From positions 1 through 64,000 of the forward strand of contig DF237048.1 in assembly GCA_000708835.1 (NCBI GenBank): 64,000 nt of DNA. The letters run 5' to 3'. Origin of the DNA: Klebsormidium nitens. Its lineage: Eukaryota > Plantae > Klebsormidiophyceae. This document shows positions 15,022 to 63,313 of this stretch, one piece after another. The stretch's first letter is position 1. Each line of letters begins with the position of its first letter. Under the pieces are notes generated by a model, which made no database searches, was not told where the DNA came from, and saw only the letters and a list, made by a program, of their open reading frames with translations. The translations under genes were made by a program, and so were the position numbers.

Positions 15022-16374
15022 ATGACACCTGCAATGGGTCTCTGGGCCATTTTTGAAACTGCCTGCTACCCGGTCGCCCAAGTCCTGCTCCTGTGCTTGG
15101 TCGGCGCAGTCCTAGCTAGTCGCCGAGTCAACAAGTTCTCTCCCGACGCTAGGAAACACTTGAACCACATGGTCTTTCTAGTCTTCACGCCCGCGCTCGT
15201 ATTCGTCAACCTAGGGCCGGCCGCCACGATCGCAGCACTCTGGCAGTGGTGGTTCCTCCCTTTTAGCGTCCTGATAAACACAATCCTTGGGGCCTGTCTA
15301 GGTTACTTAGTTGTGGCCTTGACCAAACCGCCGCCGCACCTAGTTAGGCTGACAGTCGCTTGCTGCGCAGTTGGGAACATGAGCAACCTTCCGCTGGTGC
15401 TCATCGGAGCCATCTGCTCGAACTCAGGCGCCGTCTTTGGGCCCGAATGCTCTTCGCAGGGACTGGCGTACTCGTCCTACGGAATGGTGATGGGAGTCAT
15501 TGCAATGTGGGTCTTCGCTTACCCATACCTCGAGCCCCCCCATGAGACTGATGAGCTGCTCAACAGTCTATGCCACCGTGAGCCTTCTGAGGAACCTTCC
15601 TCTCTCTCGGCTGCGGAAGACATAGGTTCAGACAAAGAGGGGGTGGCGTTTGAAGCAATGGTTGATGGTCACGATCAGCCACAGCCAGCGGGAGGTTGTC
15701 CACCGATAACTTGGTCAGATAGATTTGAGAGCAATGATGACAGGGGTCTTTCACCGGGACTACAAGCAACGAGGGATGTTGTAAACTCCAGTACGGAGCC
15801 ATTCGCCGATGAGCGCATTCGGGGTGGGCCGAAATGTTGGGAGTGGCAGAGTTTCTTAGGGCGTCAAAGGTGGGATAGGATAATCACCCCTCCGGTTAGC
15901 GGAGTGATCTGTGCAATCCTAGTGGGTGCAATCAGCCCCCTCAAGAGCGCACTTTTCGGGCCGAATGCACGATTCAAGCTGCTGACGGACGTCATTGTGA
16001 ACTTAGCAGCCGCGATGACTCCGTGCATGATGCTGGTGTTGGGGGGGAACATAGCGGAGGGCCCCAGAGCGTCAGCGTTGAAGGCTCAGACTATTCTGGG
16101 CATTGGTTGTGTCCGGCTGATTGTCCTGCCGGTACTAGGCATTGGAGTTCTGAAGTGCGCAGATGCGCTGTCGCTGCTCCCTCCGAACGACCCCCTCTTC
16201 CGGTTTGTGGTGCTCTTGCTATCCGCTATGCCAACCACACACAACATTGGCATAGCCGCAACGATGCACGGGACCCGGGAGCTGGAGACATCGGCGCTTC
16301 TCTTTTGGTCCTATCTTGCCTCCACGTTGACCATACCTGTATTCATGATGCTGTTTTTGTACTATCTCCTTTGA
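15022..16374 (+). CDS. PILS: PIN-LIKES (PILS) auxin efflux carrier family membrane protein, single exon (start may be ATG 15034)
   Basis: 450-aa ORF with two hydrophobic TM bundles separated by a hydrophilic loop. PILS-type motifs: PVAQVLL, VFTPALVF, WWFLP, CAVGNMSNLPLVLIGAIC, PCMMLVLGGN, DPLFRFVVLL, AMPT. Confidence 0.93.
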   Translation: MTPAMGLWAIFETACYPVAQVLLLCLVGAVLASRRVNKFSPDARKHLNHMVFLVFTPALVFVNLGPAATIAALWQWWFLPFSVLINTILGACLGYLVVALTKPPPHLVRLTVACCAVGNMSNLPLVLIGAICSNSGAVFGPECSSQGLAYSSYGMVMGVIAMWVFAYPYLEPPHETDELLNSLCHREPSEEPSSLSAAEDIGSDKEGVAFEAMVDGHDQPQPAGGCPPITWSDRFESNDDRGLSPGLQATRDVVNSSTEPFADERIRGGPKCWEWQSFLGRQRWDRIITPPVSGVICAILVGAISPLKSALFGPNARFKLLTDVIVNLAAAMTPCMMLVLGGNIAEGPRASALKAQTILGIGCVRLIVLPVLGIGVLKCADALSLLPPNDPLFRFVVLLLSAMPTTHNIGIAATMHGTRELETSALLFWSYLASTLTIPVFMMLFLYYLL

Positions 16375-17548: not shown

Positions 17549-23517
<5,969 letters not shown>

Positions 23518-24260: not shown

Positions 24261-27200
24261 ATGGCGTCTCCTTGCTGCTGGGGCCCTTCTGGCGGACTTG
24301 GCGAACTGTCATGGAGGGACACGGCGGGGCAGGCAGCCGTCCGACTTATGATGGAACTCAGCATGTTGAAGGGACGACTCCAAGAACAGGAGGGGAGGAC
24401 CAGGAATGCGGAAGAAAGAGTAAGTTGAAATCTGCTTATAACACCAAGACATATGCATCAAAGTGTAAGGTCTCGCAGCATTGCTTTGTGTTTTACCGGC
24501 CTGGCATCTTCTACATGCCATCGCTGAAGCAATAGTCGTTGAAAGTTCACAGCATTGCGTTTTTAGGGTTTGCAGGAAAAGGGACCTTGTGCTCTTATTT
24601 CGACGTCAGGAGATGAATTAATCAATCTGCAGCTTATGCTGGATGACTAGGTTCACAGAGCGGGTATGGAGCGAGGAAAACTTCTAGTACGGTACCTTGG
24701 TTAGTCCAACCTTGCTGTGCTCACTGATTACGACAAGCAATGCACCAATTGCTGGATACTTTGTGAAGCGGGCTGCTCACACAATTTCACAGCCAACAAT
24801 TCTTCAAGCAGTGCATTTAACCCTATGATATGTGCAATTGCTTTTTGGCATCTAGGATCTCAGATGGCAGTTCCACTGTGCCTGAGCTTCCTGTGCTGAT
24901 CCAGTCTTCTTCTCAGTCTACATTCTATCATTTCCTTTTTCCTCCACTCCCAACAGCAAGGGCTCATCCTTTTCCTGGGTTTAGGTCCAAGCTAGACTTC
25001 TCAAGCGGCTCTGCTCAACCAGGCGCAATTACATCGATACATCCCGAAAGCCAGTTCCGCAATCTCAAAGGGCTGAAACTGCAGCGTGCTCTTTCCAGGC
25101 AGCTGTTGCAGAGAAAGAGCGCGAAGCACACCGGAAGACGCTTCAGCAGCTCCAAGCTGCAGAGAAGGAGAACGAGACCCTGCTGAACGTTATTCAGAAG
25201 CATAGCGAGATAATCCAAAGGGTAAAGCACAAGGAACAAGAGCTGGACACCGAAGCAGGCGGGATCAAGGTCGCTCTTAAGAGTGCACAGAGTGAGAATG
25301 TGGAGCTGCGAAGAGAGATGGCGAGAGTGACGAGGGAGAAGAACGAAGCGGAGCACCTGGCAGGGTGAGAACAGGGACAGACTTTCGTTGCTGCGGAATG
25401 GGCGCATGATTTGCCGTACTTGTGAAGAAGTTTTGTGGCAGCTTGAGTGTCTGGAGCAATCGACGGGGTATTCCTCTTACATGATGACGCGGAAATGTCA
25501 GATTGAAGCTTTGGTGGGAAGGAAGAACCTTTCAGAAGCCGTGGGGGGGACTTTGCTCAATAGTGACCCTCTTTCCAACGAACAGGTCGCCAACGTCTTG
25601 GAACGCTGAGTTCAGCAAATGGCACAGTCACAAACGTGGGATTATTAGCCAAAGGTTGAAGAAAGTATTTGAGAGACGAACGACTTATGCCAGAGCTTTC
25701 TCCTATTTCAACCCACTTTCTCTGGTCCGTCAGGCAGATTGCCTTCGCGCTGTCAACGCTGAGCTCAGCGAGGGGTACAGCCACAACAAAGACGTAGCGG
25801 CAGTGGAAAGAGGCTTACTTTTGATCTCAAGCTTCGAAATCGAAAGCTCATCGTTATCTGAAAACGAAAATTCAGCTACTTTGCATTCTCCACACAGGCA
25901 GATCGCCGATGCCCTCGACGCTGAGCTCAGCAAGGGGCACAGCTACGACGAGGACGTGGCGGCGGTGGAGGCGCGGTTGCGCGAAGCGCAGGCCGCACAG
26001 GAACAGCTGGCGCAGGAGAAGCAGGACTTGCAGCGAGCGTGTAGCCGCATGACGCGGGACCTCAAGTGAGGCTTCATTTCTATTCCNNNNNNNNNNNNNN
26101 NNNNNNNNNNNNNNNNNNNNNNNNNNNNNNNNNNNNNNNNNNNNNNNNNNNNNNNNNNNNNNNNNNNNNNNNNNNNNNNNNNNNNNNNNNNNNNNNNNNN
26201 NNNNNNNNNNNNNNNNNNNNNNNNNNNNNNNNNNNNNNNNNNNNNNNNNNNNNNNNNNNNNNNNNNNNNNNNNNNNNNNNNNNNNNNNNNNNNNNNNNNN
26301 NNNNNNNNNNNNNNNNNNNNNNNNNNNNNNNNNNNNNNNNNNNNNNNNNNNNNNNNNNNNNNNNNNNNNNNNNNNNNNNNNNNNNNNNNNNNNNNNNNNN
26401 NNNNNNNNNNNNNNNNNNNNNNNNNNNNNNNNNNNNNNNNNNNNNNNNNNNNNNNNNNNNNNNNNNNNNNNNNNNNNNNNNNNNNNNNNNNNNNNNNNNN
26501 NNNNNNNNNNNNNNNNNNNNNNNNNNNNNNNNNNNNNNNNNNNNNNNNNNNNNNNNNNNNNNNNNNNNNNNNNNNNNNNNNNNNNNNNNNNNNNNNNNNN
26601 NNNNNNNCCTTCTTGGTCATGGAATCATATAGGTACACCGAGCTTGTTAGGTAGAGCGTTGAAGCTGCTTCGGGGCCTCAAAGAAGCGATCCTGTGGCCA
26701 CATTGTGAGGCTTGGAAACTAAGCGCAGACCGCTTGGCTTGGAATTCTTGTGTAACATGTCGTACGCCAGAAATGACTGTCGCAACATACTGCTTTCAAG
26801 TTTGCACTGTTCTCTGCAGCCCGTCGATGAACGCAGGGTCGAGTTGCTTGCAGTGCTCAGTATATCTCGGTTAAGCACGGGGTCAGAGGCCGGGTCTGTG
26901 GGGCGATTGACTGTCCGACCCCTTCCGCATTGTCCTTTTAATGAGACGGTTTTGAGTTTTTGTGTACAGGGCTGCAAAGGAGAGAGTAGAGGAGGCCGCC
27001 GTCAAGGAGCGTTCCGCTTCGATCAAGCTCGGCAAGGTGAATATTCACGCTATTGATGACGGGAATCCGAAAAGTTGCGGCACTTTCTGGTTTGCCAGTT
27101 CAAGTTTCGAAACTCAAAGGTTCTGAACCGGGATGCGCTGCTGCTGGTCCCCGTTCTGAGTTCTTACCTCCTTCCCGCCCTCGATCAGAATGAATATCCA

Positions 27201-36990: not shown

Positions 36991-38079
36991 ATGGGGCGGG
37001 GAAGCGGGTCCGGCGCCGGGAAGGGGCTCGCCCTCTCGGCCGCCCTGATGCAGAAGATTCTGCTGAGCTACCTGTATGTGTCGATCTGGATCGTGCTCAG
37101 CGCGGCGGTCATCCTGTACAACAAGTACATCCTGGACCGCAAGATGTACAATTTTCCATATCCCCTCACGCTGACCATGTTCCACATGGCCTTCTGCTCG
37201 TCCCTGGCTTTCCTTATCATTCGGGTTTTCAAATGGGTAGAACCGATTGGGTTGACGCGCGAGCAGTACATGGAGTCCGTCGTCCCAATCGGGGTGCTTT
37301 ACGCGCTCAGCCTCTGGTTTTCCAACTCTGCCTACATTTATCTCTCAGTTTCCTTCATCCAGATGCTCAAAGCACTCATGCCGGTCGCTGTCTATTCCAT
37401 CGGCGTGGTCTTCAAGAAGGAGGTCTTCAGCGTGGAGACCATGGCTAACATGCTGGGGATCTCAGTTGGAGTTGCAGTAGCCGCATACGGAGAGATCAGG
37501 TTCGACGTTTTTGGGGTGATCCTCCAGCTCGGGGCGGTGGCCACAGAAGCAACCCGGCTGATCCTTGTCCAGATCCTGCTAACCTCCAAGGGGTTGAAGC
37601 TTAACCCGATCACTTCCCTGTACTACATCTCCCCCGCCTGCCTAGCCTTCCTCACCATCCCCTGGGTCTTCATCGAGATGCCTCGGCTGCAGCAGATCGC
37701 CATGTGGCGGTTCGACCCGTTCGTATTCCTGTCCAACGCGTCCGTTGCTTTCGGGTTAAATCTCGCGGTCTTCCTTCTGATCGGCAAGACGAGCGCGCTG
37801 ACCATGAACGTGGCGGGGGTGGTCAAGGACTGGTTACTGATTGCCATTTCCTGGTTCCAATTCAAGGACCCTGTGACAAGCACCAATCTGTTTGGGTACA
37901 GCCTCGCGTTCCTGGGGGTCTGTGTGTACAACCACGCAAAGCTAAAGAAGGCCGTGCAGAAGGAGGCCTCCAGGAAGCCTGAGGGGGACGTGGAGAGGGC
38001 GGAGGCTGAGGAGAGGGTTCCGCTGAAAGACATGGGAGAGGACAAGCCGCTAGACTCCCGTGGTGGGGGCCAGAGTTGA
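36991..38079 (+). CDS. UAfT: Nucleotide-sugar/triose-phosphate transporter family protein, closest in motif to Arabidopsis UDP-arabinofuranose transporters (UAfT clade); single exon
   Basis: 362-aa multi-TM ORF with [83 protein letters not shown]. Substrate assignment is by similarity only. Confidence 0.88.
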
Positions 38080-50276: not shown

Positions 50277-53200
50277 ATGGCAGCGCCGCCAAGAACTCTC
50301 ACCGGTGAGTCCTTTGAATGATTGTTGCCCTTGAGCGTCAAGTCCGTAAAGGCTTCAGGATGTTTCCCAGATTGCTCACTGATTGAACAACTTGCTTGGG
50401 AAATGCTGTCACGAAGGAGGGATATTGAACAATGCTCCTAGGCGTCTCCAGCAGGTGGGGTTTTTTCAATATGCTGCGGAAATTTGATTTCAGGCAGCCT
50501 TTGAGCTCGTCTCCGGGTCGCGCTTGCTCCTTTTGGCACAGTCCAAGTGAAATTGGGAAAGAGTCTTGTTCAGTTCAGCGCAGTGTTTTGAACCCTTCTC
50601 CTTGTCATGGACCATGATGCACGCTGGTTTCACCATCAGAATGAGCACTTGAACTGTTAGCGCAGATCAGGAGCTCGATGACATCCTTTTCTGCTGTCTG
50701 GTTTTGAAGACTTTTCTACTACTATATGAGATTCGAGGAAGGTTGGCTTTGTCCACAAAAAATTGGGAGTTCGAAATTGAACAGCTTCCGAGATCCCACT
50801 AGTCAACAAGGAGCGATTCAAGGAGCAGCAGGAAGAGCTTTCTTCTGTGATCACCGTCAAGAAGTTGGTCTGCTCTGCTGGGGATCGCCGCTGTTCGGCA
50901 GTTTGCCAGCATCTTTTCGCAGACTATTCTCTGGTTCAGCATTTGCGCTAAACTCTCAAGTACCATGCCACGGCTTCTGCCAAATGATTTCTTTACAACC
51001 TAAAAGCTAGGTTCCCATCCCATGGCACATTTTTCGGCAAGCTTTTGTTCAAGCGTGACTTCCGGATTCTGTTTCGAAAGCAAGGACGCCCTCTCCGTGT
51101 CCGCTTCCTCAAAATGCATTCTTCTTTTTTTCGTACACTTCGTGAAGTCGTGCAGAGTCAGAAAGAACCTGTTTTCTCGAAGGTTTTTCAGAGCACGTCA
51201 TAGTTCAAGAGGTTTGTTGTGCGTTTGTTCAATCGTCTTCACTTATGCTTTCCAAGAGGCATCATGTAACATTCATAACGTTACTTTGTTCATCGTTCTT
51301 CATCAGCAGGCTTGCTTGTGGCTACGCATGAGGATCAATTATACTCAAATTTTGCGATCCCTGTTCCAACTTTTCCTTGTCCAGCTTTCAATGGCTGAGC
51401 TTCCAAGATTGCTTATCCACTGCCTTACTAACTTCATTTCTATGGATACCAAGTGGCCTTTCTGACCATCTCTTATGAACATTTTCCGCAGCCCTTATGC
51501 ACCCGGAATGGAAGGAGTGTGCGGAATGCCTCTCACCAGAGGGCCGCTGGAGCACCCACGTGTCCACCGACAAGCCGATCTACCGCCAGGGTGACACCTT
51601 CCACATCCGCGCAGTCGTGCTGCACCCCATCACGGGGGAGCCGGTGTCAGACGAGAATCCGCAGAACCGCGCCTACGACATGAACGGCACCATACAGGTA
51701 AGATCTTGGGCCGTATGTTTCAGATGTTGCAGCTTGCCAAACGGATGGAACCTTTGAACGTCAAAGCGGGTATAGCTGGAATCCTCTCAGGGATCATGCA
51801 TTTAATGTAAGAAGGAAACAGCAAGCTCTTTCGTTCGCTTCACGATTTTCGGCGTGTCTTTTCACGCTCGCATCAAGAGGACGAGTTAAGAAGCTATTGT
51901 GACTCTAACAAGTGCTAGCTTCTTTCTCAAAAAGCATCCATGTTGTTTATAGCTCGAAATATCTTTGCACAGATAGAACGAAGAAAGGACCGTGCTGGGA
52001 TATCGAATAACGGCGTTCAAAAGACCAGCGCAACTCTCTCTTGCGCAGGTCATATCGCCAAAGGAAAGCGTGGAGGCGACTATGTACATTGACGGCCCCA
52101 TGGAAAGCGTGATGTATAATAAATGGAGTGTCCCCGAAGGTCTGTCGGGGGGTGAATACACTCTTCGATACACGCCGCGCGGCTACAGCGGTATGGGTCG
52201 GAACAGCCCCCCAGCAGAGCGCAGATTTCAGATCCGCGCTTTCCGGAGCCCCAAGCTGAACGTGAGGGTGGAATTTCTGGGAAGGGGGTACGGCCCCGGG
52301 GATGAGGTCAGGGCGAAGGTGAGAAAGCAGGAGTCAGAATCATCGACAGGGTTCCAGGGGTTGAGGACTGTAGAAAAGTCGGATTGTATTAAAATTCTGG
52401 AAACCTCTATTGGGTCTCTGCAAGATATAAAACTTCACAGATATACAATGGAGCTCGTTCTGTGACGCCTGACAGTCCGGCAAAAAGGGCCCGGGGGCGC
52501 ACGAACGAGCATAGAAGCCTTTAGAAGGTCTAGAATAACGCAGTATATACCTTCGTTCCTCGTTCTTTTTGAATGATATCGTTCACATGTGGAAGGGTGA
52601 CAAGTCAGCAAGGCTGCAGTTCACGTGGTATCGTTCCGCGGCGGCCTCGGAAACAGACAATCTCGTACAAACAGACATTGGTCTGGCCCGTACCGTTATG
52701 ATCAGCTTCTCATTCTCAAACTACAAAGGAACGCTTTGCCAAAGCGGTATGACCATCCATTGAATCTAAAATGTGCTTCTCCGTTCATTCAGCCACATTT
52801 CCACCAATCCTGTCCGTCCAGGTCTCAGTAACCCGCGCCGAAGGCGGCGCGCCCCCGGCCGCGACTCCCGTGACGCTCTCCGCGCGCGTCGACGGTGCCC
52901 CGGTTCACACTTCCCCGGCGGCCCTCGACGATTCGGGGGTATGCTACGTCACCTTTTCGCTCCCCCCCGAAATGAAAGAGGGCCTGGGCGCGCTGAACGC
53001 GCTCGTATCCGACGGGGGAACCGTCGAGAGCGGCAGCAAAACGATCCCGATCGTGCTGCAGACTGTGAACTTGGAGTTCTTCCCCGAAGGCGGGGTGCTG
53101 GTTCCAGGTGGGAATCTCAATTCCAATGTTTGGAAAACTGTTTTGCAATCTGATTAGTAGCATCTGATAGCTCGTCTACAGAGACAACGATTCATGTTCA

Positions 53201-56200
53201 AAGCGACGTGGATTTCTTTCAAACGAAGTGGTAAAAAATGCGCTCTTAAGATGTCTAGTTGTTCGAGAGATGCTTGCGCGAAATTCGCGAGATGCAGCCT
53301 TGACGCGAAGTTCCAAACACGAAGTAGCAGGATCTGGACGAATAGGTACTACGATTGAAAATAACGATATCATTAAGCCGCTACCTTTCTATTCAGGATC
53401 TGATAACATCAATCATACCGGCACAGGTCTCGAGAACCGGGTCTACTTCGAAGCGCGCGACCCAACAGAGGAGCCCGTCGACATCGCTGGAGAGGTGTGG
53501 GCGGTCGGTGGGAATGCGCCCCTTGCCACCTTTGCCGCAGTCCACGAAGGCTGTGGAAATTTCGTATTCACACCGATCGCCGGTCAGGCGTACGAGGCCC
53601 GCATTACCAAACCGGGCAACATCAAGAAACCGGTGCCGTTGCCAGCGGTAGAGGAAGCGATCGCGGACGGGCTGCCACGTGTCGTTCTGCGAGTGGACGG
53701 TTTAGCCGATGCGGAGATGGCCGAGGTGGAGAAACCTCCAAACCCCGAGGAGTTTGCGGTCGACGTCACCGTCGCGAGCGCGGCCGCGGCGCTCTTTCGG
53801 GTCGTTCTGTACAAGCGCGAGGTCGCCCTCGACAGCAAGGACGCGGTGATCCTCTCCCCGGGGGGGTCCAAGAAGCTGTCGCTGCACCCCCCAGGACCGG
53901 AATACGCGGGCGTCCTGCGGGTGACCGTCTTCGCAGAGGACGGCGACGATTGGACGCCCGTCGCGGAGCGGCTCCTTTACCGCGTGCCAGAGAAAAATCT
54001 CCACGTGGCAGTCTCTGGTGGCTCCAGCGCGAGCGGCGGGGGGGACTGCGTCCCTGGGGAAAAGGCCCGGGTGGAGGTGGCGGTAACGGATGCGGCAACG
54101 GGGGAGCCGGTTACCGGGGCCGTGGTGGGGTTAAGCGTGGTGGACAACAGTAACCTGGAGCAGGTGGAGCCGCGCAGGCGGCCGCCGCGCCTGCCCGCGA
54201 TGGCGCTGCTCGAGGACGAGGTGCGGCGCCCAAACCCTTCAACCCCTTAACCCCTTGAAAATAAAACTCTTAACCCTTAACCCTTAAATACTCTTACACT
54301 CTTGAACCGGTTAAACCTTTAACCCTGAATCCTTACACCTGTAAGCATTCAAACCGTTGGACCTTCGAATTTTACAGGCGGCGTGGCCGAAAGCATCCGC
54401 ACCGGCAACCATCTCAACGGTAGAAACAAAAACTTTGATGACCCGTTCAACTTTGATGATCCGTCCGGTCGCAAAGGCTTGGAAGCTGAAGCGCTTCAAT
54501 TCTGTCAGCCGCGAAGCCTAAACTTCGACAGTTTTCGTTGTTCGGGCTCTTGTTTCAAAACCGCTTGTGGCACAATGGGGAAAGCGCACGAGACGGGCAC
54601 GAGAACCGTTTAAGCCGCTCTAGTTGCTGGAGAGAATTCGACCCGGGCCATGACAAAATCTCGCGGTGTTGAGAACGAAGTCAGCGTTCCACTTTCGGCC
54701 ACGAAGGTCTTTGGCCTGGAATCCAGAGTCGTCCGTATCTATTTCTTCAGCGGTTATCACATCGTTCGAGAAGATACATGTTTGGTGCCAAAGAAACGGT
54801 TCGGCCTGGTTAAGATCTAGTGGACCTACTTCTAGCTTGGATCAACCTTCGCAGAAGTGGCTAGCGATCGATCGGCTCTGCTCCTTGTGACAGGTGGCGC
54901 ACCTGGATGACTCCGGCGCGTACATCGACGGCTCGGATCTTCCCGGCGGCTCAGACCCGTCCCTGGCCGTCGATCTTCTGCTGGGCACCCAAGGCTGGCG
55001 CCGCTTCCTGTACCGTGACCCCCTGGAAAAGCTGCTCGAAAACGGTATCGAAGACCAAGGCCAAAAGGTACGGACCTTATCAAGAGTCTGGTGACGTCAT
55101 GTCAAAGTCCCGGGAGCGATCTGCCTTGTCTTTCCTGCGGCCTGTTGGGATCGAAGCTAAGAGATCAAAGGCATAGACTTGTCAAAAGCGTCGCAAGAGG
55201 ATGAGATGCAGAAATGATTTGGCCATTTGGGTTTCGCCACCCAGCCTCTGCCGCTTGGCATCGTTCTCGAAGCGAAAAATGTAAACCGTTGCCTCTTCTG
55301 CTAATCCAACGCGGCACGAACCGATTGTGGTTGATCAGTTTTGTTTGAAGTCTCAGAAACTCACTGCTCGCAAGAAACAAACGGAACTGTGCGAGACGTG
55401 CATCAAGTAGTGAAGTTGTTAGTGGGTCGGTAACTCTGGAAACACGAGCTGCAAGTTTTTGCTAGCACTCTGTCAATATCCTCTTGCAGAAGCCACAAAT
55501 AATGCATCAAGAGCGGATGAAGTACATTCAGGGACTGTACAGGGGAGTCAGGGTACCCGGCCAGGGATCGAAACAACGCTTGCACACTGCAAAACAGTTG
55601 CGTCGTACAAGGCGTAACACTCGAGTCGTCGAGGCTTCAGCCAAGACCAAGCAAAACGCTCGTTCTCATTCAGCGCATCTTTGTCCTGACACTCGATCGT
55701 GCATCAAAAAGCGTAAACAGCACAGCGCCACATCTGACATCTGACAGGAAAGCATCAAAATAACCAGTAAAAGAAGAAAATGAACGAGAGTTTGCTGCTT
55801 TTTTTGGCAGGCGAAGGCGCAGCGCGCGGCCGGCGTGCGCGTCAACAAGGATCCGTACGGTCACTCGTACTACCAGGGGATGGCCCCGGGCGCAGCTTTT
55901 GGCGCGAGCGCGGGCGCGGTCGGAGGAGCAACGGAGGACGAGGAAGATGAAGACATGGGGTTCAGCTTGTACGATGCTGATGAGTGAGACATCTGAACCC
56001 TTTCTTGTATGTTCGTCGCGAGGTCAAGGTCTATGATATTGAGGAGTTAGGTAAACCCTTTCTTGTATATTCGTCGCGGGAGTAAGGTTGCAGTTACACG
56101 AGATCTTGCCCGATCAGAAATTGGAGGTGATAAAGTACTTGAGTTGTTGTGTCCCACGTCTAGGGTCTACGAGCGAAGGGCTGAACATTTTTGAATCCTC

Positions 56201-59200
56201 TTTTTAGCTTTGATGCCAACGCAACTCAAAAATACGCTACTGTAGAGCAGACGGGGTCTGAAATCGGCAATCATCCAAATACTTAAATTCTCAAGTCGTA
56301 AAAGTCCACAAGAATTGTTCTACGTATTCCATTCCCGATCAAGCGGCTTCCGGGAAAGACCTAATTTGTGCCTCGACCTCAAAATGTACAAATCAAATTA
56401 CATCAGAATGTTTGGGTCTCCAACCAGAAGATAAGCAGAGCGCGGACAATGCCGTTTCAGCTCACTGAAACGGCAAGTTCGGTCTTTTCGTCCTCTGCAA
56501 CCGCAATCGCAATCGCACCCTATAACCGCACTCCTCGCCTTGTTTCCGCAGGTCAGTCGGCCTTCAAGGCGTCCAGAGTGTTTGGAGCCTCCCAGATGAT
56601 GGGATATATAGCTTCTAGGCAAGAATAGAGACTCGACCATTTTCTATGATACATTATTTTGTAGTCTTACCGTTGGATCTAATGTCCGCTTTTTGACGCA
56701 CTAACCAAACATGCAACAAAAGAAGACACTAATCAATGAAACAATAAAAACACACTGAGATAAGATGAAACAATGCTTTCTGCAGGTCAGCACGGCCGGC
56801 CGGTCTTTTGGGCGCCGTCTTGGGCCGTCGCACGCCGACTCCAGCAGCAGGCTCGACCGGTCCCTCGCCCGGTGACGCTCCCCCGGTCACATCCCCCGAT
56901 GAGCAGAACTTGCCGGAGTGGGCGGGGAATGTCCCCGAGCAATCTGAGGAAGGGGCTCAGGCAGCAAAGGATGAGGGCGACCTGGAGTTTCCATTTGCTG
57001 ATCTGGACGCTGACGTGGATCTCGATGAGGAGGACGAAGCTGACGTGGAAGGTGAGGACAAGTCTGGATAGACTCGACGAGATTCTTGTGTGCATTCATC
57101 ACTTGGATTTACGGTCCCTTGTCACAGTTGTGCATCCGATGCTTCGAAGCGGACTGTTTACGTTTGACTGCCCAACCCACAACTGAAGAAAGCCTGAGGT
57201 TTTGAAATCTCAAAGACCGGTAGTGCTTCTCTTCGCGCAATCGCAAGCGAGGCAACCGCCGACTCCGAAAGGGCAAATCTGGGTTTCTCTGAGAACAATC
57301 TTCAGATGGTTGAAGTAAACCAGACGACCCGACCGCGAACCAGATCCGCTGTAAAGCGGAGTAGGCTTTCCCACCGGCTGTTTATTTGTTCTTTTTCCAC
57401 CACCAAACTTCTATGTAGATTGCCTCCTTGCGCGAGAACCGGTTTTCGAGATTTCCCTTTTCCTGTGCCGCAGCGGAGCGCGCGAAGAAGCAACAGCGGA
57501 TTCGCGCTTCCGTCAGAGTCTTTGCTCACGAGCGACAATCCACAAAGAAGCTGCACCAAGCATACCTGAGGTAAACCGCCGCTTTCGTCAATGTCAGCAC
57601 CTTTTCGAAATAGTATCTGAACAGTTGACGTCTTGGACAGTATTCTCATTGTTGACTTCTTGGACCGCAATCGTCGCTTTCAAGAGCTGCTCTTAGGGAT
57701 GATCTCCTTCTCTCAACAATCAGACCCGGAAAGATTGCACAACGGTCAAATATCCGCAATTTCCAACATTTATGTTCTTCTCCCAGAACCTTGTGACGAC
57801 CTATTGTCCACTCAGACAATCTCTCTAGAGATCATTCAAGGAGTTCAGGTAGTTACGCTTTCCAAGCCGTTCCCGTTCCGCTCCTTCGTTCCGCCGCCCT
57901 GCCTTCGTAGGTTGACTAATCTGCAGGCCGCGAATCGTCACGGATCCTGGCTTCAGCTATTTGATGCCCTTATTTGTTTCCTGGTTCAAGGACGGGTCCA
58001 TTACGAGGAAAGCAATCAAAACTTCCCTTCGTTGAAGAGCGAGACTCATTCGAACGCTTTTTGCTTGTTCCTTTGTCACCCGTGATTGATCCTCGAACGT
58101 AAATCATTACAATTGGTTTTGTTGAATTAAGGGCTGACTTTTGCATGATAAACTCCTGCAGGAGCATCCGCCGGTCTGACTTCACGGAGACGGTCTACTT
58201 CGCCGCATCCCTAGTTACCGACGCGCGCGGCCGCGCGGCCGCGGAGTTCGACCTGAGCGACTCCATTACGTCCTTCGCCGTCATCGCCGACGCCCACAAA
58301 GCCGTCGAATTCCAAACCGAGGGCGAAACCATTACCACCACCGTTACCAGGAACGGCACGACCGTTAAGGCGACCGCGAAGGGATCCTCCCGGACCGTCC
58401 GCACGTCGGCGCTCGGCGCGTCGAACGGGGTCTTCAAGATCCGGTCGGTGAAGCCGTGGATGCCAAGTGCCCCCTGGAGCTCACGACGACCGACCGGGTG
58501 CTCCTACCGGTCACTCTGACCAACGTGACGTCAGAGAACGTCACGGTGGCGGCTAAGGTGGGAGTGCGGGGGCCTCTGTCGCTGGAAGCAACGGAAGAGA
58601 TCACCGGCGGGGCGCCAATGGACGTCGACGCCCCAGGGGATCCCCCGGCCACTTCCACAACGCTGAAGCAGACTCTGGAGGGCGCCGAAAGCGTCCGGGA
58701 GATCGTCCGATTCGTCGCGGGGGGGGCCGCTCTCACGGCGGCGTCTAAGGCCAATCCTGACGAGCCCACCCCCCTGGCGCGGGGATCGGTGACGGTAAAC
58801 GCCGCGGCTTCGGTTCGGGGGGGTCCGAAGAGGGGCGGCCAACTGCACAAGGATAGCGTCAAGAGAACGTTTGCGGTGTCGCCGAAAGGATTTCCCCAGG
58901 AGCAGTCAGTTGGCGGAATGCTCAAGCCCGGAGGGGAAAATAGAGTGGGCGGGGAGTTTGCGCTGCCGGAGGACACGCAACCGGGGAGCGTGGTGACGTC
59001 AGTCACGGTGTTCCCGTCGCCAGTGAGTCTGTTTCTGCTCGCGCCATCTTTCGTGAGGCATGACGATAAATCAAGTTACATACCACCAACTTTGCGGCTC
59101 AGGCTGAATGGTCGTGCTTTATTCATCTCACGGAGGCGTCCAGTCCCGTGCCTAGTTCCCTGATCTACCCTCACTTCGTCCTCGAAACCCTTCTCTTCTC

Positions 59201-62200
59201 AATGCAACATTTCTCTCTGATACAACAAAGCGGATCTTATAGCCTCGAATGAACTTCCTGATCTTTCTTCAGAATCTTATCGACACTTTCCGTCCTGAAA
59301 ACAGGTGCCCATGTGATTGTCGATGACTCCCGGGATCCTGTTCGCAATCTCGCTGAAAGAGACCCGCTTATGCCTTGCGCCAATTCCGCAGAAGCAGACC
59401 GTAGAAGTTCCTCGTCTTTTCCAGGTGGCAAGCCTGACGAGCGCCGCGCAGGCTCTCGTCCGCGAGCCGTACGGCTGCTTCGAGCAGACGTCAGCAGCCG
59501 TGTTCCCCAACGTCATGGCGCAGCAGTACTTCAAGACGCACCCCGGGGCGTCGCCAAAGCTTATGGAGAAGTCGTATATGCTATTGGGCTCCGGCCTGGA
59601 GCGGCTGAGGGGATTCGAGGTGGAAGGGAGCGGCGGTTATGACTGGTTCGGAAAGGCGCCCGCGCACGAGGCGCTGACCGCATATGGGCTGCAGCTGTTC
59701 ACGGATATGGCGCAGGTAGGAGCCCGTATATCCGTTGGGTAAGCTCTTATGTATCTTTTCCAGAGAGGATTCTGCGCGGAGTGGCTTTTGGGCCGGTAGC
59801 ATCGGTTTCAAGAGCACTTCGCATCTTGCAGATAACTGTATGGATTGCGAAAGCCGAAACAATTGTTTTAGTTACATTGCCGGCCTCGTAGGTGATAACT
59901 CGTTCCTGCGCAATACTGAGCAAAACGGTGGCTCAACAATTCGTCAGCGTACGTCACGGCTGTTGACATCTTTTTCGAAGTTCGTTACAGGAGACACGGA
60001 CTGAATAAACAGAAGGCAGCGCCGCTTGTCTACGCTGGTGTTCTGCTCAGGTCCGCTGAGGTTCCAAAGTGTCGAATCCAATCGGTAGCTAGAACCGGTC
60101 GCCACGAAACTCCCGGGCCCACTCGGGCCTGTTTGGTCCCGGCTCCATGCCCTTCAATGTTCTTTTCTGCTGCCTTTGTTGTTCCGCTGCGAATAAGTTT
60201 GTAGTGACTCCCGCAACCGTTCCGCAGGTCTACCCCGTCCCGAAAGACATGATCCGCCGGACTCGCGACTGGCTCCTGAGCCGCAAGAACGACACCACGC
60301 GCGCGTTCAACATGCATACGTATACGGTGTGGGGCGGAGTCGGCGCGGCGCCTGCTGACGTCAACAACGCCTACATCGTGTGGTCGCTGACGTGTGCCAA
60401 CATGGGCGACAGCCTGGAGCCGCAGGTAGACTAATTCTAAAGTTTGCTCTGTTGAAACACTTGTGGTCTTCAGAGACCAACAATCAAATCAGCCCAAAGT
60501 CTAACATTCACATCGGAAACCTAACATTTTAGCACAGACTCTGAATTTCGAAACCTGAAACTCAGCTCCCAGTGCCAGGATCCAAGCTCTCAACGTCAGA
60601 TGCGGGAACTCTCAAGCTTTGCGATCCAGAACCTCTCAGAGTACGTTTCAGAAAGGGAAAGATAATACAAACCGCTTCTTGCTCTTCGCGCTTTGTTACA
60701 AGCAGTCCACCGTCCCGCTCAATACTGCCTCTCGAACGTCCGCTCTATGTGCAGATTGCCAGCCTAGTGGAGCAAGCGGCGACCAACAAGGACCCGTACT
60801 TTGTTGCCATGGTCGCCGACACGCTCTACAAGGTGGGGCGCAAGGATGAGGCGGGACAGCTGGCACGTGGCCTCCAGAAGCACCAGGTAAGAGACGTGTC
60901 GTACCGGAAGCAAGTACCGAAACCTGAAACCTTCATTCCATACCGGTTTGCTCCCTTCTTCAGAAGGACTTCGCGATTGGTACCTTCGAAGCAAGAAAAA
61001 ACGTTTCAGAGGCAGAGGAACCTTTCTTGTGAAGATGGACGAAGGTTAGCCGTCGCCCTTCCCAGCTCATCTTGTAGTGCTTGACGAGTTTGATACGTTG
61101 TTCCATGTTCGCGTCCGTTTCGCGACGGGCACATTCGACGCACAGATTCTGTGACATATCCCGGTCTTGAGACTCATATTCCTTATCTAAAGTGACTCTG
61201 CAAAAACATGGGGACTTATTGCCAGGATGTTAGAGAGGAAAAAGATCCCACAAAGCTTCTACCTGAAGCGGATTCTATCTTCAGTCTTCCGCAACTTTTC
61301 ACGACCCTACTCGAATTTTCGAAACTTCTGGACCCGCAACCCTTACACCCCGAACTCTGCAGAAGGCCGACGGTTCCGTCCGTGGCGCCACGACGTCAAT
61401 CACGCGCTCGGGCGGCGACTCCCTGCTCGTCGAAACCACTGCCCTGGTCGCCCTCTGCTGGCTGAACGACGTCGAAACCTTCGGCGCGGCCGCGCGTCGC
61501 GCGATCGACTGGATTGCAACTAGGTGCGCGGGCGGCAGATTCGGATCCACGCAGGCGACCGTGCTCGCGCTCAAAGCGATTGTGCGCTATGACGTCGCGG
61601 TGACGTCAGCGCGCGCGCCCGGGACGGTGCACTTGGTCGTGGACGGGGAGCGCGTGGAGAGCATAGCGTATGGCGCGGGAGCGGTGGGCGCCATAGCATT
61701 TGGGGACGTGGCGCCGCGGATGAAGGCCGATGGGCGCGCGCGGAATGTGGAGGTGGAGATGGAGGGCGGGGCGCTTATGCCGTGCGCGATCCAGGTGACT
61801 TCATAGCGCATACAACCCTCTTCTCTCGCGCAGAACCGCTGTAAGCCAAGCGTTGCTTTTTATTGGAAGCGGACTTTGTTCGCGTGGGCGCATCCTAGAA
61901 GCGCCGGCGAGCGTTTCAATTCAGGCCCTTAGGCACCAGAATAACCCAATAGATGTCTCTGGCAAAACGCCAAGGGCGTCAACAATCCATCTCTTAGATT
62001 CACTTAACTCATCAGAAGGTGATTGACTCCACTTCATTTTAGTAAGATCCTTTGATGCTACGTCTCTGGTCATATGGTCATGTTCCGCGTGTAACATTTG
62101 GCAACCCACCCGCTCCGTTTCCGCTCCAGCTCCGCTACCACTCGGAGCGGCCCCCCTCCGCGGCCGCGGATGCAGTCGCGCTGCGCGTCGCGCTGGCGCA

Positions 62201-63313
62201 GCCGGCCGCCCGGGATGGCGACCTCGTCGAGGTTTTGGTGACTGAGAAACCAGACGAGGCGCTTCCGATCCGCCCAATGACATTCCGCTTTCCGCCGCAG
62301 GTCCGCTACCACTCCGAGCGCCCCCCTTCCGCGCCCGCGGCCGCGGTCGCGCTGCGGGTCGCGCTGGCGCAGCCGGCCGCCCGGGAGGGCGACCTCGTCG
62401 AAGTCCTGGTGACCCTGAATAATACAAAACCAGACGAAGAGCTGCCCATGACGGTCGCCATCGTCGGCCTGCCGGGGGGCCTCGAGCCGCGGCACGACCA
62501 GCTCAAGGAGCTCGTGACACGTGGCGACGTCGCGTTTTACGAGGTATGGATCCTGCAACTCCCGGAAGCTCTCGGCTCTTTCGCCAGGGAGCTCAGTAAT
62601 TGCCAGGTATCTTTGGTGGAAGGACAACGGAGCAAGTAAGCGGATCACTGCATTGGGGTGTCCTCCACGTCGGCTAGGAGGAGGTGCATTCAAGTGAAGC
62701 GTGGTCATTCCAGCATGGCAGATAGGTGCATGATTGCACGAAAGAGCCGTCCAAGCGCTCAAGTCCGTTCTCTCGTCGACGCGGGAAGATGCGGTTTCCC
62801 TAAATTGGCTGAGGCCTCCGCTTCTTACTGCGTTGTTGACACTCCGCTGAAGATACTGCGCTGTTAACGTCACGCCACTCATCTTCGAATACACCTGAAC
62901 GTCCGATGGGCACGTTTCTTGGCGTCCTTATCGTTCTCTCCAACCGGAGCTTCCCTTGAATCTGGCATCTGTTACCAAGCCGTCACCTACTCGCAAGAAT
63001 CATTCAGTCCTCCAATCTCGCATCTGTTATCAAGCCATCACCTACTCGCAAGAATCATTCACTCCGCCAAGACGAGAAGAAGGAGCAGGTCCCTCAAAAG
63101 CTCCACTGTCCTTTTTGATTGCAGATCCGCGGCCGTGAGGTCATCTTCTACTGGCGCGCCCTGGCGGCCAATCAGACGGTGGCGCTGCGCGTGGAAACGA
63201 CGGCCGCGGTTCCGGGCGAGTACATCGGTCCCGCGTCGAGAGCGTATCTCTACTACACAGATGAGCTAAAGACGTGGGCGGAACCCCTGAAGTGCAGCAT
63301 CGCCCCAAAGTAG
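50277..63313 (+). CDS. Alpha-2-macroglobulin / thioester-containing protein, bacterial-type, about 1,550 aa, 16 exons, with one apparent frameshift
   Basis: Exons 50277-50304, 51492-51697, 52049-52318, 52822-53107, 53427-54220, 54894-55067, 55811-55983, 56786-57051, 57474-57570, 58162-59022, 59425-59715, 60228-60425, 60755-60886, 61363-61794, 62301-62543, 63125-63313 (4640 nt; all junctions phase-consistent, one internal shift at ~58456). Motifs: STDKPIYRQGD (MG2), FFPEGG, DLLLGTQGWRRF, RRSDFTETVYF, LSDSITSF, thioester PYGCFEQT, GRFGSTQATVLALKA, GLPGGLEP, GPASRAYLYY. Confidence 0.92.
54232..54335. repeat. Degenerate telomere-like (TAACCCT/AACCCCT) microsatellite just inside A2M intron 5
   Basis: aaacccttcaaccccttaaccccttg...ttaacccttaacccttaa...tttaaccctg. 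Confidence 0.6.
62101..62300 (+). repeat. In-frame partial duplicate of A2M exon 15 with its own acceptor
   Basis: ctccag|CTCCGCTACCACTCGGAG... (start 62130) mirrors ccgcag|GTCCGCTACCACTCCGAG... (start 62301). The offset is 171 nt (57 codons) with no stop. Confidence 0.9.
62965..63065. repeat. About 55-bp intronic tandem duplication (A2M intron 15)
   Basis: gcatctgtta(c/t)caagcc(g/a)tcacctactcgcaagaatcattca at 62965 and 63020. Confidence 0.9.

Follow-up and report, generated by a model that had tools for sequence, protein, structure and literature searches.

Does a streptophyte alga encode a thioester protein of the alpha-2-macroglobulin (A2M) superfamily, is that protein made, and where did its gene come from? 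These questions are raised by a locus at positions 50277-63313 (plus strand) of the first 64,000 nucleotides (nt) of Klebsormidium nitens NIES-2285 contig DF237048.1 (GCA_000708835.1), a stretch that we call the window. The locus is a third K. nitens paralogue of a bacterial-type GCFEQ gene of the A2M/TEP superfamily, and it is nuclear and expressed. We consider it likely that this third copy, transcribed, spliced and belonging to a bacterial-type family with a eukaryotic subclade, has recently suffered a 7-nt deletion that truncates its product. An earlier, sequence-only reading of the window had announced an intact thioester. The motif itself is whole, with PYGCFEQT encoded by ccg tac ggc tgc ttc gag cag acg at 59467-59490 and GCFEQ at 59476-59490, but the gene is broken, because the deletion parts the bait half from the thioester half.

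The lesion was located in a DNA alignment of the three paralogues, in which 7 nt present in both other copies are missing from exon 10 of this one between 58455 and 58456, with near-identical flanks. At this site the paralogues read GTTCTAC or GTTCTCG, encoding F-Y or F-S (..KPF[YS]VD..). The frame matches the paralogues up to ...FKIRSVKP (58455), and VDAKCPLELT... from 58456 lies in another frame. Before the lesion lie 2588 nt of coding sequence (862 codons plus 2 nt) and after it 2052 nt, and both parts are free of internal stops. The shifted translation runs through 21 out-of-frame codons to a TGA at 58517-58519, giving a product of 883 amino acids (aa) without the thioester domain (TED). 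The two intact paralogues, P0153 and P0154, carry the MG domains and bait region on the same polypeptide as the TED; this copy does not. A deletion in exon 10, probably recent, has thus shifted the frame: the sequenced mRNA encodes a protein of MG domains, bait region, the start of MG7 and 21 out-of-frame residues, and the coding sequence for CUB, TED and MG8 farther downstream persists, free of stops and well conserved, out of frame. In the standard A2M mechanism, a protease would cut the exposed, fast-evolving bait region, and the ensuing change of shape would let the Cys-Gln thioester in the TED bond covalently to the protease and trap it. We infer this trapping for the family and a live thioester for the intact paralogues; the thioester of this locus is probably not made.

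RNA from four runs of one study, probably of the sequenced strain, was assembled de novo, and the contigs were placed on 54001-60000. In each of the four runs, a 780-nt contig matches 58219-58998 without a single mismatch or gap, which excludes an error of the genome assembly at the frameshift. We also rejected repair of the frame by a micro-intron or by alternative splicing, since the contig shows no splice at this site and homology to the paralogues is unbroken on both sides apart from the 7 nt. A full-length thioester protein of ∼1546 aa might still be made through −1 frameshifting or recoding at 58455-58516, or from undeleted sequence in some cells or alleles. Such a product would suit the stop-free 2052 nt downstream, which are conserved as in the intact paralogues, and the similar mRNA depth on the two sides of the lesion. 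However, no X_XXY_YYZ slippery heptamer is present in any frame of the 148 nt where the two open frames overlap, for which reason we rejected programmed −1 frameshifting; homology changes frame exactly at the deletion, and an insertion-bearing contig was reported in none of the four runs, although rare variants are dropped by contigs. We regard a full-length product as very unlikely.

How old the lesion is can be gauged from the sequence beyond it. Across 127 downstream columns that are ≥90% conserved among non-Klebsormidium homologues, this copy retains 115, and the intact paralogues retain 113 and 119; two of the losses in this copy are the deleted residues themselves. Downstream conservation thus equals that of the intact paralogues, suggesting either that the lesion is recent or that the downstream part is still used. 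Several observations weigh against our account. The undecayed downstream half is also compatible with continued use. A premature stop should trigger nonsense-mediated decay, and yet no obvious depletion is seen along the transcript (k-mer depth, ∼10 upstream and ∼13 downstream of the lesion). The RNA comes from a single study, so the deletion may be a mutation of the laboratory strain and not a feature of the species; the orthologous contig L004 (SRR23617307) ends 87 nt into exon 10, short of the deletion site. Exon 1 and several 3′ junctions are supported by homology only. This copy is most likely a young pseudogene or carries a strain-specific lesion.

In GenBank, the locus (scaffold DF237048.1, 206 kb) is divided into an 872-aa MG2 gene at 51497-58519 (KFL_000990110; protein P0155, 95 to 100% identical to the window exons over 51497-58516) and a 686-aa TED_complement gene at 58618-63313. 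This split is a consequence of the 7-nt frameshift; KFL_000990110 and the adjoining gene are the two parts of a single gene whose frame is shifted. Could they nevertheless be two working genes, one for an 883-aa MG/bait protein, possibly a decoy bearing a motif like that of the ribosomal P-stalk (see below), and the other for a CUB-TED-MG8 protein begun at the internal ATG at 58618? This is exactly GenBank's model, conserved residues are retained in both halves, and the P-stalk-like motif of the N-terminal half is kept in L004 while its flanks diverge. Neither a transcript start nor a contig boundary is seen at 58520-58618, however, and a single contig spans 58219-58998. We know of no mechanism for an A2M that lacks a covalent link between bait and TED, and a TED half without MG1-6 would leave its thioester open to hydrolysis, as is established for C3 and A2M. 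Two functional genes are, in our judgment, unlikely.

A homology-guided junction search gives 16 exons and 15 GT..AG introns over 50277-63313, with a GC content of 65% in exons and 48% in introns. The sequence-only reading had described a full domain layout across 16 spliced exons; its motifs and exon number hold, but the layout is not continuous, as exon 10 is frameshifted before the thioester part. The features of the locus, with the evidence for each, are as follows.

50277-50304, plus strand: exon 1 (predicted), ATG plus nine codons and 1 nt (MAAPPRTLT.), donor ACCG/GTGAGT.
51492-51697, plus strand: exon 2, N-terminus and start of the first MG domain (STDKPIYR); MG2 match, P0155 at 98.6%, junction model.
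51497, plus strand: GenBank start ATG, within exon 2; GenBank.
52049-52318, plus strand: exon 3, GYGPGD motif; homology, P0155 mapping, junction model.
52822-53107, plus strand: exon 4, FPEGG motif; homology, P0155 mapping, junction model.
53427-54220, plus strand: exon 5, the largest N-terminal exon, MG domains and a weak A2M_BRD match; Pfam, P0155, 3′ junction in RNA.
54894-55067, plus strand: exon 6, DLLLGTQGWRRF motif and start of the bait region; RNA joints 54220/54894 and 55067/55811.
55811-55983, plus strand: exon 7, bait region with acidic EDEEDEDMGFSLYD at 55934-55975; RNA joints.
56786-57051, plus strand: exon 8, bait region, acidic and of low complexity; RNA joints.
57474-57570, plus strand: exon 9, end of the bait region (RVFAHER...); RNA joints.
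58162-59022, plus strand: exon 10, A2M domain (MG7) and CUB region, frameshifted; P0155, RNA, junction model, DNA alignment.
58455-58456, plus strand: site of the 7-nt deletion in exon 10; three-paralogue DNA alignment, gapless RNA contig.
58517-58519, plus strand: premature TGA, the end of GenBank KFL_000990110; P0155 mapping, GenBank.
59425-59715, plus strand: exon 11, start of the thioester domain, PYGCFEQT; Pfam, RNA, junction to 60228 by a loose end.
60228-60425, plus strand: exon 12 (TED); homology, junction model, RNA loose end.
60755-60886, plus strand: exon 13 (TED); homology, junction model.
61363-61794, plus strand: exon 14, end of the TED and second half of the CUB region; homology, junction model.
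62118-62413, plus strand: in-frame tandem duplication of 171 bp; sequence comparison.
62301-62543, plus strand: exon 15, C-terminal MG8/RBD-like domain, with the acceptor preferred by homology; junction model.
63125-63313, plus strand: exon 16, ASRAYLYYTDE motif, with the stop codon at 63311-63313; homology, junction model.

Transcription and splicing are directly visible in the RNA, so the possibility that the locus is untranscribed, which would have undercut the sequence-only reading, falls away. About half of the sampled words of 58100-61900 are present in the four runs, which equals the exonic share of that stretch. Five introns are documented by contig joints, all GT..AG and with pieces matching at 0 mismatches (54220/54894, 55067/55811, 55983/56786, 57051/57474, and 57570/58162). 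A sixth, between exons 11 and 12, is supported by a loose RNA end at 59717 that resumes at 60230; the other 3′ junctions come from homology only. Depth is 50 to 330 at 58001-58400 and 58801-59200 and ∼10 elsewhere in the locus. These high-depth bins are contigs of the paralogue KFL_005520040 (P0154), which are ≥95% identical to this locus over short stretches, and loose ends other than 59717 likewise trace to the P0154 locus, which is much more strongly expressed. One contig of KFL_005520040 enters a paralogue intron, a case of intron retention, and another is spliced (L002 15729, 16365).

At the 5′ end, RNA contigs reach 146 to 305 nt upstream of ATG 51497, as judged from contig coordinates, and sampled words of 51190-51496 have a share of 0.00 in X1 and X3, the two listed runs with at least 146 nt of upstream transcript. 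An intron therefore ends just before 51497, and a 5′ untranslated region contiguous with this ATG is ruled out. The acceptor ccgcag/CC at 51490-51491 is phase-compatible with the donor ACCG/GTGAGT at 50304 that follows ATG 50277, and with exon 1 in place the predicted N-terminus would read MAAPPRTLTALMHPEWKE.... The start at 50277 proposed by the sequence-only reading agrees with this model; exon 1 itself is predicted. At the other end, the duplication in exon 15 comprises copies at 62118-62242 and 62289-62413 (88% identical), doubling the acceptor and the first 125 nt of the exon. Two usable acceptors result, before 62130 and before 62301, and the upstream one would add 57 duplicated residues to the C-terminal domain. 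The 686 aa of the GenBank product exceed the 629 aa of the homology model by exactly these 57 aa, indicating that GenBank uses the upstream acceptor.

What kind of thioester gene is this? The motifs GYGPGD, FPEGG, LLLGTQGWRRF and ASRAYLYY are all found in plus-strand open reading frame (ORF) pieces between 51.5 and 63.3 kb, and from ∼51500 to 63313 the locus aligns collinearly with bacterial and algal homologues of full length. Exon-sized pieces match the Pfam families MG2, A2M_BRD (weak), A2M (weak) and TED_complement, and they have no match in NCBIfam. Exon 11 alone gives 38.9 bits with TED_complement (cutoff, 22), identifying a CxEQ thioester domain, and P0155, the product of the locus, gives 53.2 bits with MG2 (cutoff, 32.8), identifying an N-terminal MG array. 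The A2M_BRD score of 19.6 lies below the cutoff of 22.7. At the expected position of the bait region, between GTQGWRRF and RVFAH..DFTET, lies an acidic segment of ∼200 aa that has diverged among the paralogues. The full-length paralogues match MG2, A2M, TED_complement and bMG10/A2M_recep.

These paralogues are the 1575-aa protein P0153, which GenBank already calls alpha-2-macroglobulin [Klebsormidium nitens] (DF237321.1), and the 1573-aa P0154 (DF237501.1), which is 72% identical to this copy. Both are full length with a continuous ORF. They share with this copy 60 to 78% identity per exon, domain order, GCFEQ, the lack of a signal peptide, and, across the trio, 12 of 15 intron positions. The 7-nt deletion, the exon 15 duplication and the P-stalk-like motif in a differing bait region set this copy apart from the two, and its RNA depth is much below that of P0154, the intact, best-expressed copy of the three. 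In the GenBank model of P0153 (L003), a segment of ∼60 aa (residues ∼1181-1243) is matched neither by the other copies nor by bacteria, and it brings odd extra intron positions; it may be a retained intron.

The arrangement of the C-terminal half was examined on the paralogue P0154. An AlphaFold model of P0154 residues 776-1573 (798 aa; mean confidence score pLDDT, 83; predicted template-modelling score, 0.76) has the layout beta, beta, alpha-barrel, beta, beta, consistent with MG7-CUB-TED-MG8 as modelled. It matches native C3, C5, A2ML1, A2M, CD109, TEP1 and ECAM with Foldseek E values of 1e-32 to 1e-35, and its template-modelling (TM) scores are ∼0.6 to 0.67 to native forms and ∼0.3 to C3b. 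The nearest PDB entries by sequence are human A2M (1e-20), CD109 and A2ML1, TEP1, and complement C4. The animal proteins A2M, A2ML1, CD109, TEP1 and C3/C4/C5 have the same native MG7-CUB-TED-MG8 fold as the P0154 model and a CxEQ in the TED. They are, however, only 15 to 18% identical to the algal proteins, which have GCFEQ in place of GCGEQ and lack a signal peptide, an anaphylatoxin domain and a C345C domain. The view that the gene is of a bacterial type and not an animal GCGEQ protein was well founded: its nearest non-algal relatives are bacterial, at 36 to 45% identity, with the same motifs invariant. A kinship with the YfhM type fares worse. Enterobacterial YfhM/ECAM and Salmonella SaA2M, the bacterial monomeric thioester A2Ms, match the P0154 model in fold (4ziu, TMt 0.74), but in the PDB sequence search they reach only 3e-5 to 4e-4 (human A2M, 1e-20), and they are periplasmic lipoproteins. 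Proteins of this type are ∼1650 aa long and have a lipobox and, at the N-terminus, the additional domains MG0 and NIE (PMC12939704). The algal protein, with ∼1546 aa, no hydrophobic N-terminus and weak sequence similarity, is not one of them.

The largest exon served as query in an exhaustive HMMER search, which together with two subsequent word-index searches led to the three annotated K. nitens proteins P0153, P0154 and P0155. A profile built from the EukProt Trinity protein P0003 and the window exons gave poor scores, yet it retrieved a K. nitens paralogue. The closest non-algal proteins are bacterial, 1350 to 1450 aa long, from Planctomycetota, Myxococcota, Melainabacteria and other bacteria, and all have GCFEQ. 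At least 583 GTDB species-genome loci encode relatives with the GTQGWRRF or GCFEQ[TA]S motif, mostly in Planctomycetota, Myxococcota, Melainabacteria, Kiritimatiellota, Lentisphaerota and Sumerlaeota. This bacterial family, annotated as A-macroglobulin complement component or MG2 domain-containing protein and including members from Myxococcus, Corallococcus and Archangium, is collinear with the algal proteins over the full length; STDKPIYR, GYGPGD, YPEGG, DLLLGTQGWRRF, PYGCFEQTS and PASRAYLYYTDE are invariant or nearly so in both. In nearly every bacterial protein examined, the bait region is shorter (∼150 aa versus ∼190 to 230 aa in the alga) and the gene has no introns; some of these proteins have anti-sigma zf-HC2 N-termini.

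High similarity to bacterial proteins could, in principle, betray bacterial contamination or an assembly artefact. The chance of this is negligible, and contamination is effectively refuted: the gene has 15 GT..AG introns and spliced RNA contigs, it sits on a 206-kb scaffold among eukaryotic genes, and two more paralogues with common intron positions lie on other scaffolds. Its neighbours in the window are eukaryotic and plant-like, including Mem_trans (PIN/PILS type), TPT and NOSIP/Rtf2 genes, so that plant-like surroundings, spliceosomal introns and RNA all confirm the gene as nuclear in the alga. Two ORFs of this intron-rich region lack introns, a 450-aa Mem_trans (PIN/PILS-type) frame (15022-16371) and a 362-aa TPT-family transporter frame (36991-38076). 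Runs of N, marking assembly gaps, occupy 19878-20065 and 26087-26607 of the window.

Is the gene a green-algal acquisition from bacteria? The sequence-only reading had proposed an old horizontal transfer followed by intron gain. A bacterial origin and intron gain fit our data, but acquisition by the green lineage alone does not, because the clade is common to the alga, Amoebozoa and Anaeramoeba. Further eukaryotic candidates were flagged in a tree of the exon 5 region and named by cluster look-up. They come from the EukProt transcriptomes of Mastigella eilhardi, Dracoamoeba jomungandri and Protostelium nocturnum and from Anaeramoeba ignava, whose ‘macroglobulin / complement’ gene (KAJ5074214.1) lies on a 1.65-Mb nuclear contig. 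In the main tree (43 rows, 1242 columns, LG+C20 PMSF; support given as UFBoot/SH-aLRT), the Klebsormidium trio is supported at 100/99, the trio plus P0003 at 100/100, and these plus Mastigella and Dracoamoeba at 99/95. All nine eukaryotic-type rows group at 94/87 and form one clade in 92% of bootstrap trees; the core family including them has 100/100, and one betaproteobacterial sequence and Bacteroidota-type sequences fall outside it. Quick trees are concordant, with 96 to 97 SH-aLRT for the grouping of all eukaryotes. A further point against our account is that eukaryote monophyly reaches 94/87 with long branches, which together with composition bias qualify the tree and make long-branch attraction possible.

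The eukaryotic relatives resemble the algal proteins in their placement in this one clade, in the GCFEQTS thioester and, for most, in lacking a signal peptide; they differ in being only ∼30 to 40% identical, and Dracoamoeba has a signal peptide. P0003 also shares the longer bait region, starting K(E/D)KF(E/K)R. No specific bacterial donor was resolved in the tree, in which the eukaryotic clade is sister to two Planctomycetota at only 72/55. In an alternative model, the green or Klebsormidium lineage, separately from the other eukaryotes, long ago took the gene directly from a Planctomycetes- or myxobacteria-like donor and then gained introns. This model could draw on that weak sister relation, on the bacterial identity of the top-scoring non-algal matches of the algal proteins, and on the lack of intron positions in common with Anaeramoeba. 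We think it improbable, since the best non-self match of P0003 is a Klebsormidium protein (917 bits versus 704 for the best bacterium), the Klebsormidium proteins and P0003 join the amoebozoan ones and then all eukaryotes at the support values given above, and signal-peptide loss is common to most eukaryotic members. A Klebsormidium-specific transfer does not fit this pattern. The Anaeramoeba homologue has two introns, neither at an algal position; with 12 of 15 introns common to the algal trio, this fits intron gain after arrival. On the sequence evidence we favour a bacterial origin of the eukaryotic clade, through either one old transfer with much subsequent loss or spread from eukaryote to eukaryote.

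Environmental sequences also fall in the eukaryotic clade (the P0043 cluster with 14 members, P0088, P0084, P0131 and P0134), and the genes on an ENA metagenome scaffold (L085) and a contig of GCA_902530625.1 (L086) seem to be split by prokaryote-style gene calling, suggesting that more uncultured eukaryotes have the family. A sequence from a Myxococcota metagenome-assembled genome (L037), which falls near the base of the core family, lacks a signal and starts with MGILDKILDAF, resembling MKIFDKILGKK of Protostelium P0052; either a eukaryotic-type sequence binned in error or a bacterial lineage without the signal could account for it.

Where would the eukaryotic proteins act? As a measure of N-terminal hydrophobicity, we took the Kyte-Doolittle 12-residue maximum ahead of the first MG domain. 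Among the bacterial homologues examined, this value is ∼2 or more with just three exceptions, marking a signal peptide or membrane anchor. The maximum is ≤0.64 in the three Klebsormidium proteins (for this copy, with the predicted exon 1), P0003, Mastigella and Protostelium; the Anaeramoeba N-terminus is polar (MGQKPTKQEAE), and Dracoamoeba has its signal peptide. The lack of a hydrophobic segment suggests that the algal proteins act at a nonsecretory, intracellular site. A nonsecreted thioester protein would be unusual.

The exon 7 bait-region motif EDEEDEDMGFSLYD resembles the C-terminal peptide of ribosomal P-stalk proteins. L004 (2279-2473) keeps the motif as EEDEDMGYSLFD in an exon that is only 56% identical overall, and the DMGF core is absent from P0153 and P0154 in the compared sequences. 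One could imagine that the Klebsormidium/amoebozoan branch is an intracellular thioester trap and that, in this copy and its orthologue, a P-stalk mimic in the bait would lure and capture cytosolic attackers that bind the P-stalk, for example ribosome-inactivating proteins or pathogen-delivered proteases, with the 883-aa product as a possible decoy. We offer this as a long shot.

Thioester proteins are treated as an invention of animal innate immunity plus a separate bacterial branch. We found no papers on these Klebsormidium genes in the literature on algal, streptophyte, amoebozoan and protist macroglobulins, thioester proteins and lateral gene transfer. That one intact paralogue is an alpha-2-macroglobulin was already known from its GenBank name; the frameshift with its annotation split and the eukaryotic clade common with amoebae are new. 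The words plant, alga and protist are all absent from a 2026 review of A2M evolution (PMC12939704).

For this locus, the practical point is one of annotation, namely, that KFL_000990110 and its neighbour belong to one gene, and P0154, intact and best expressed, is the concrete protein for tests. More broadly, a streptophyte alga has a spliced, expressed three-gene thioester family, which lies in a eukaryotic clade with amoebae and Anaeramoeba that is nested among bacteria and mostly lacks a signal peptide. The question thus moves from a single transfer into a green alga to an old family, patchily retained or spread between eukaryotes, that may act inside the cell.

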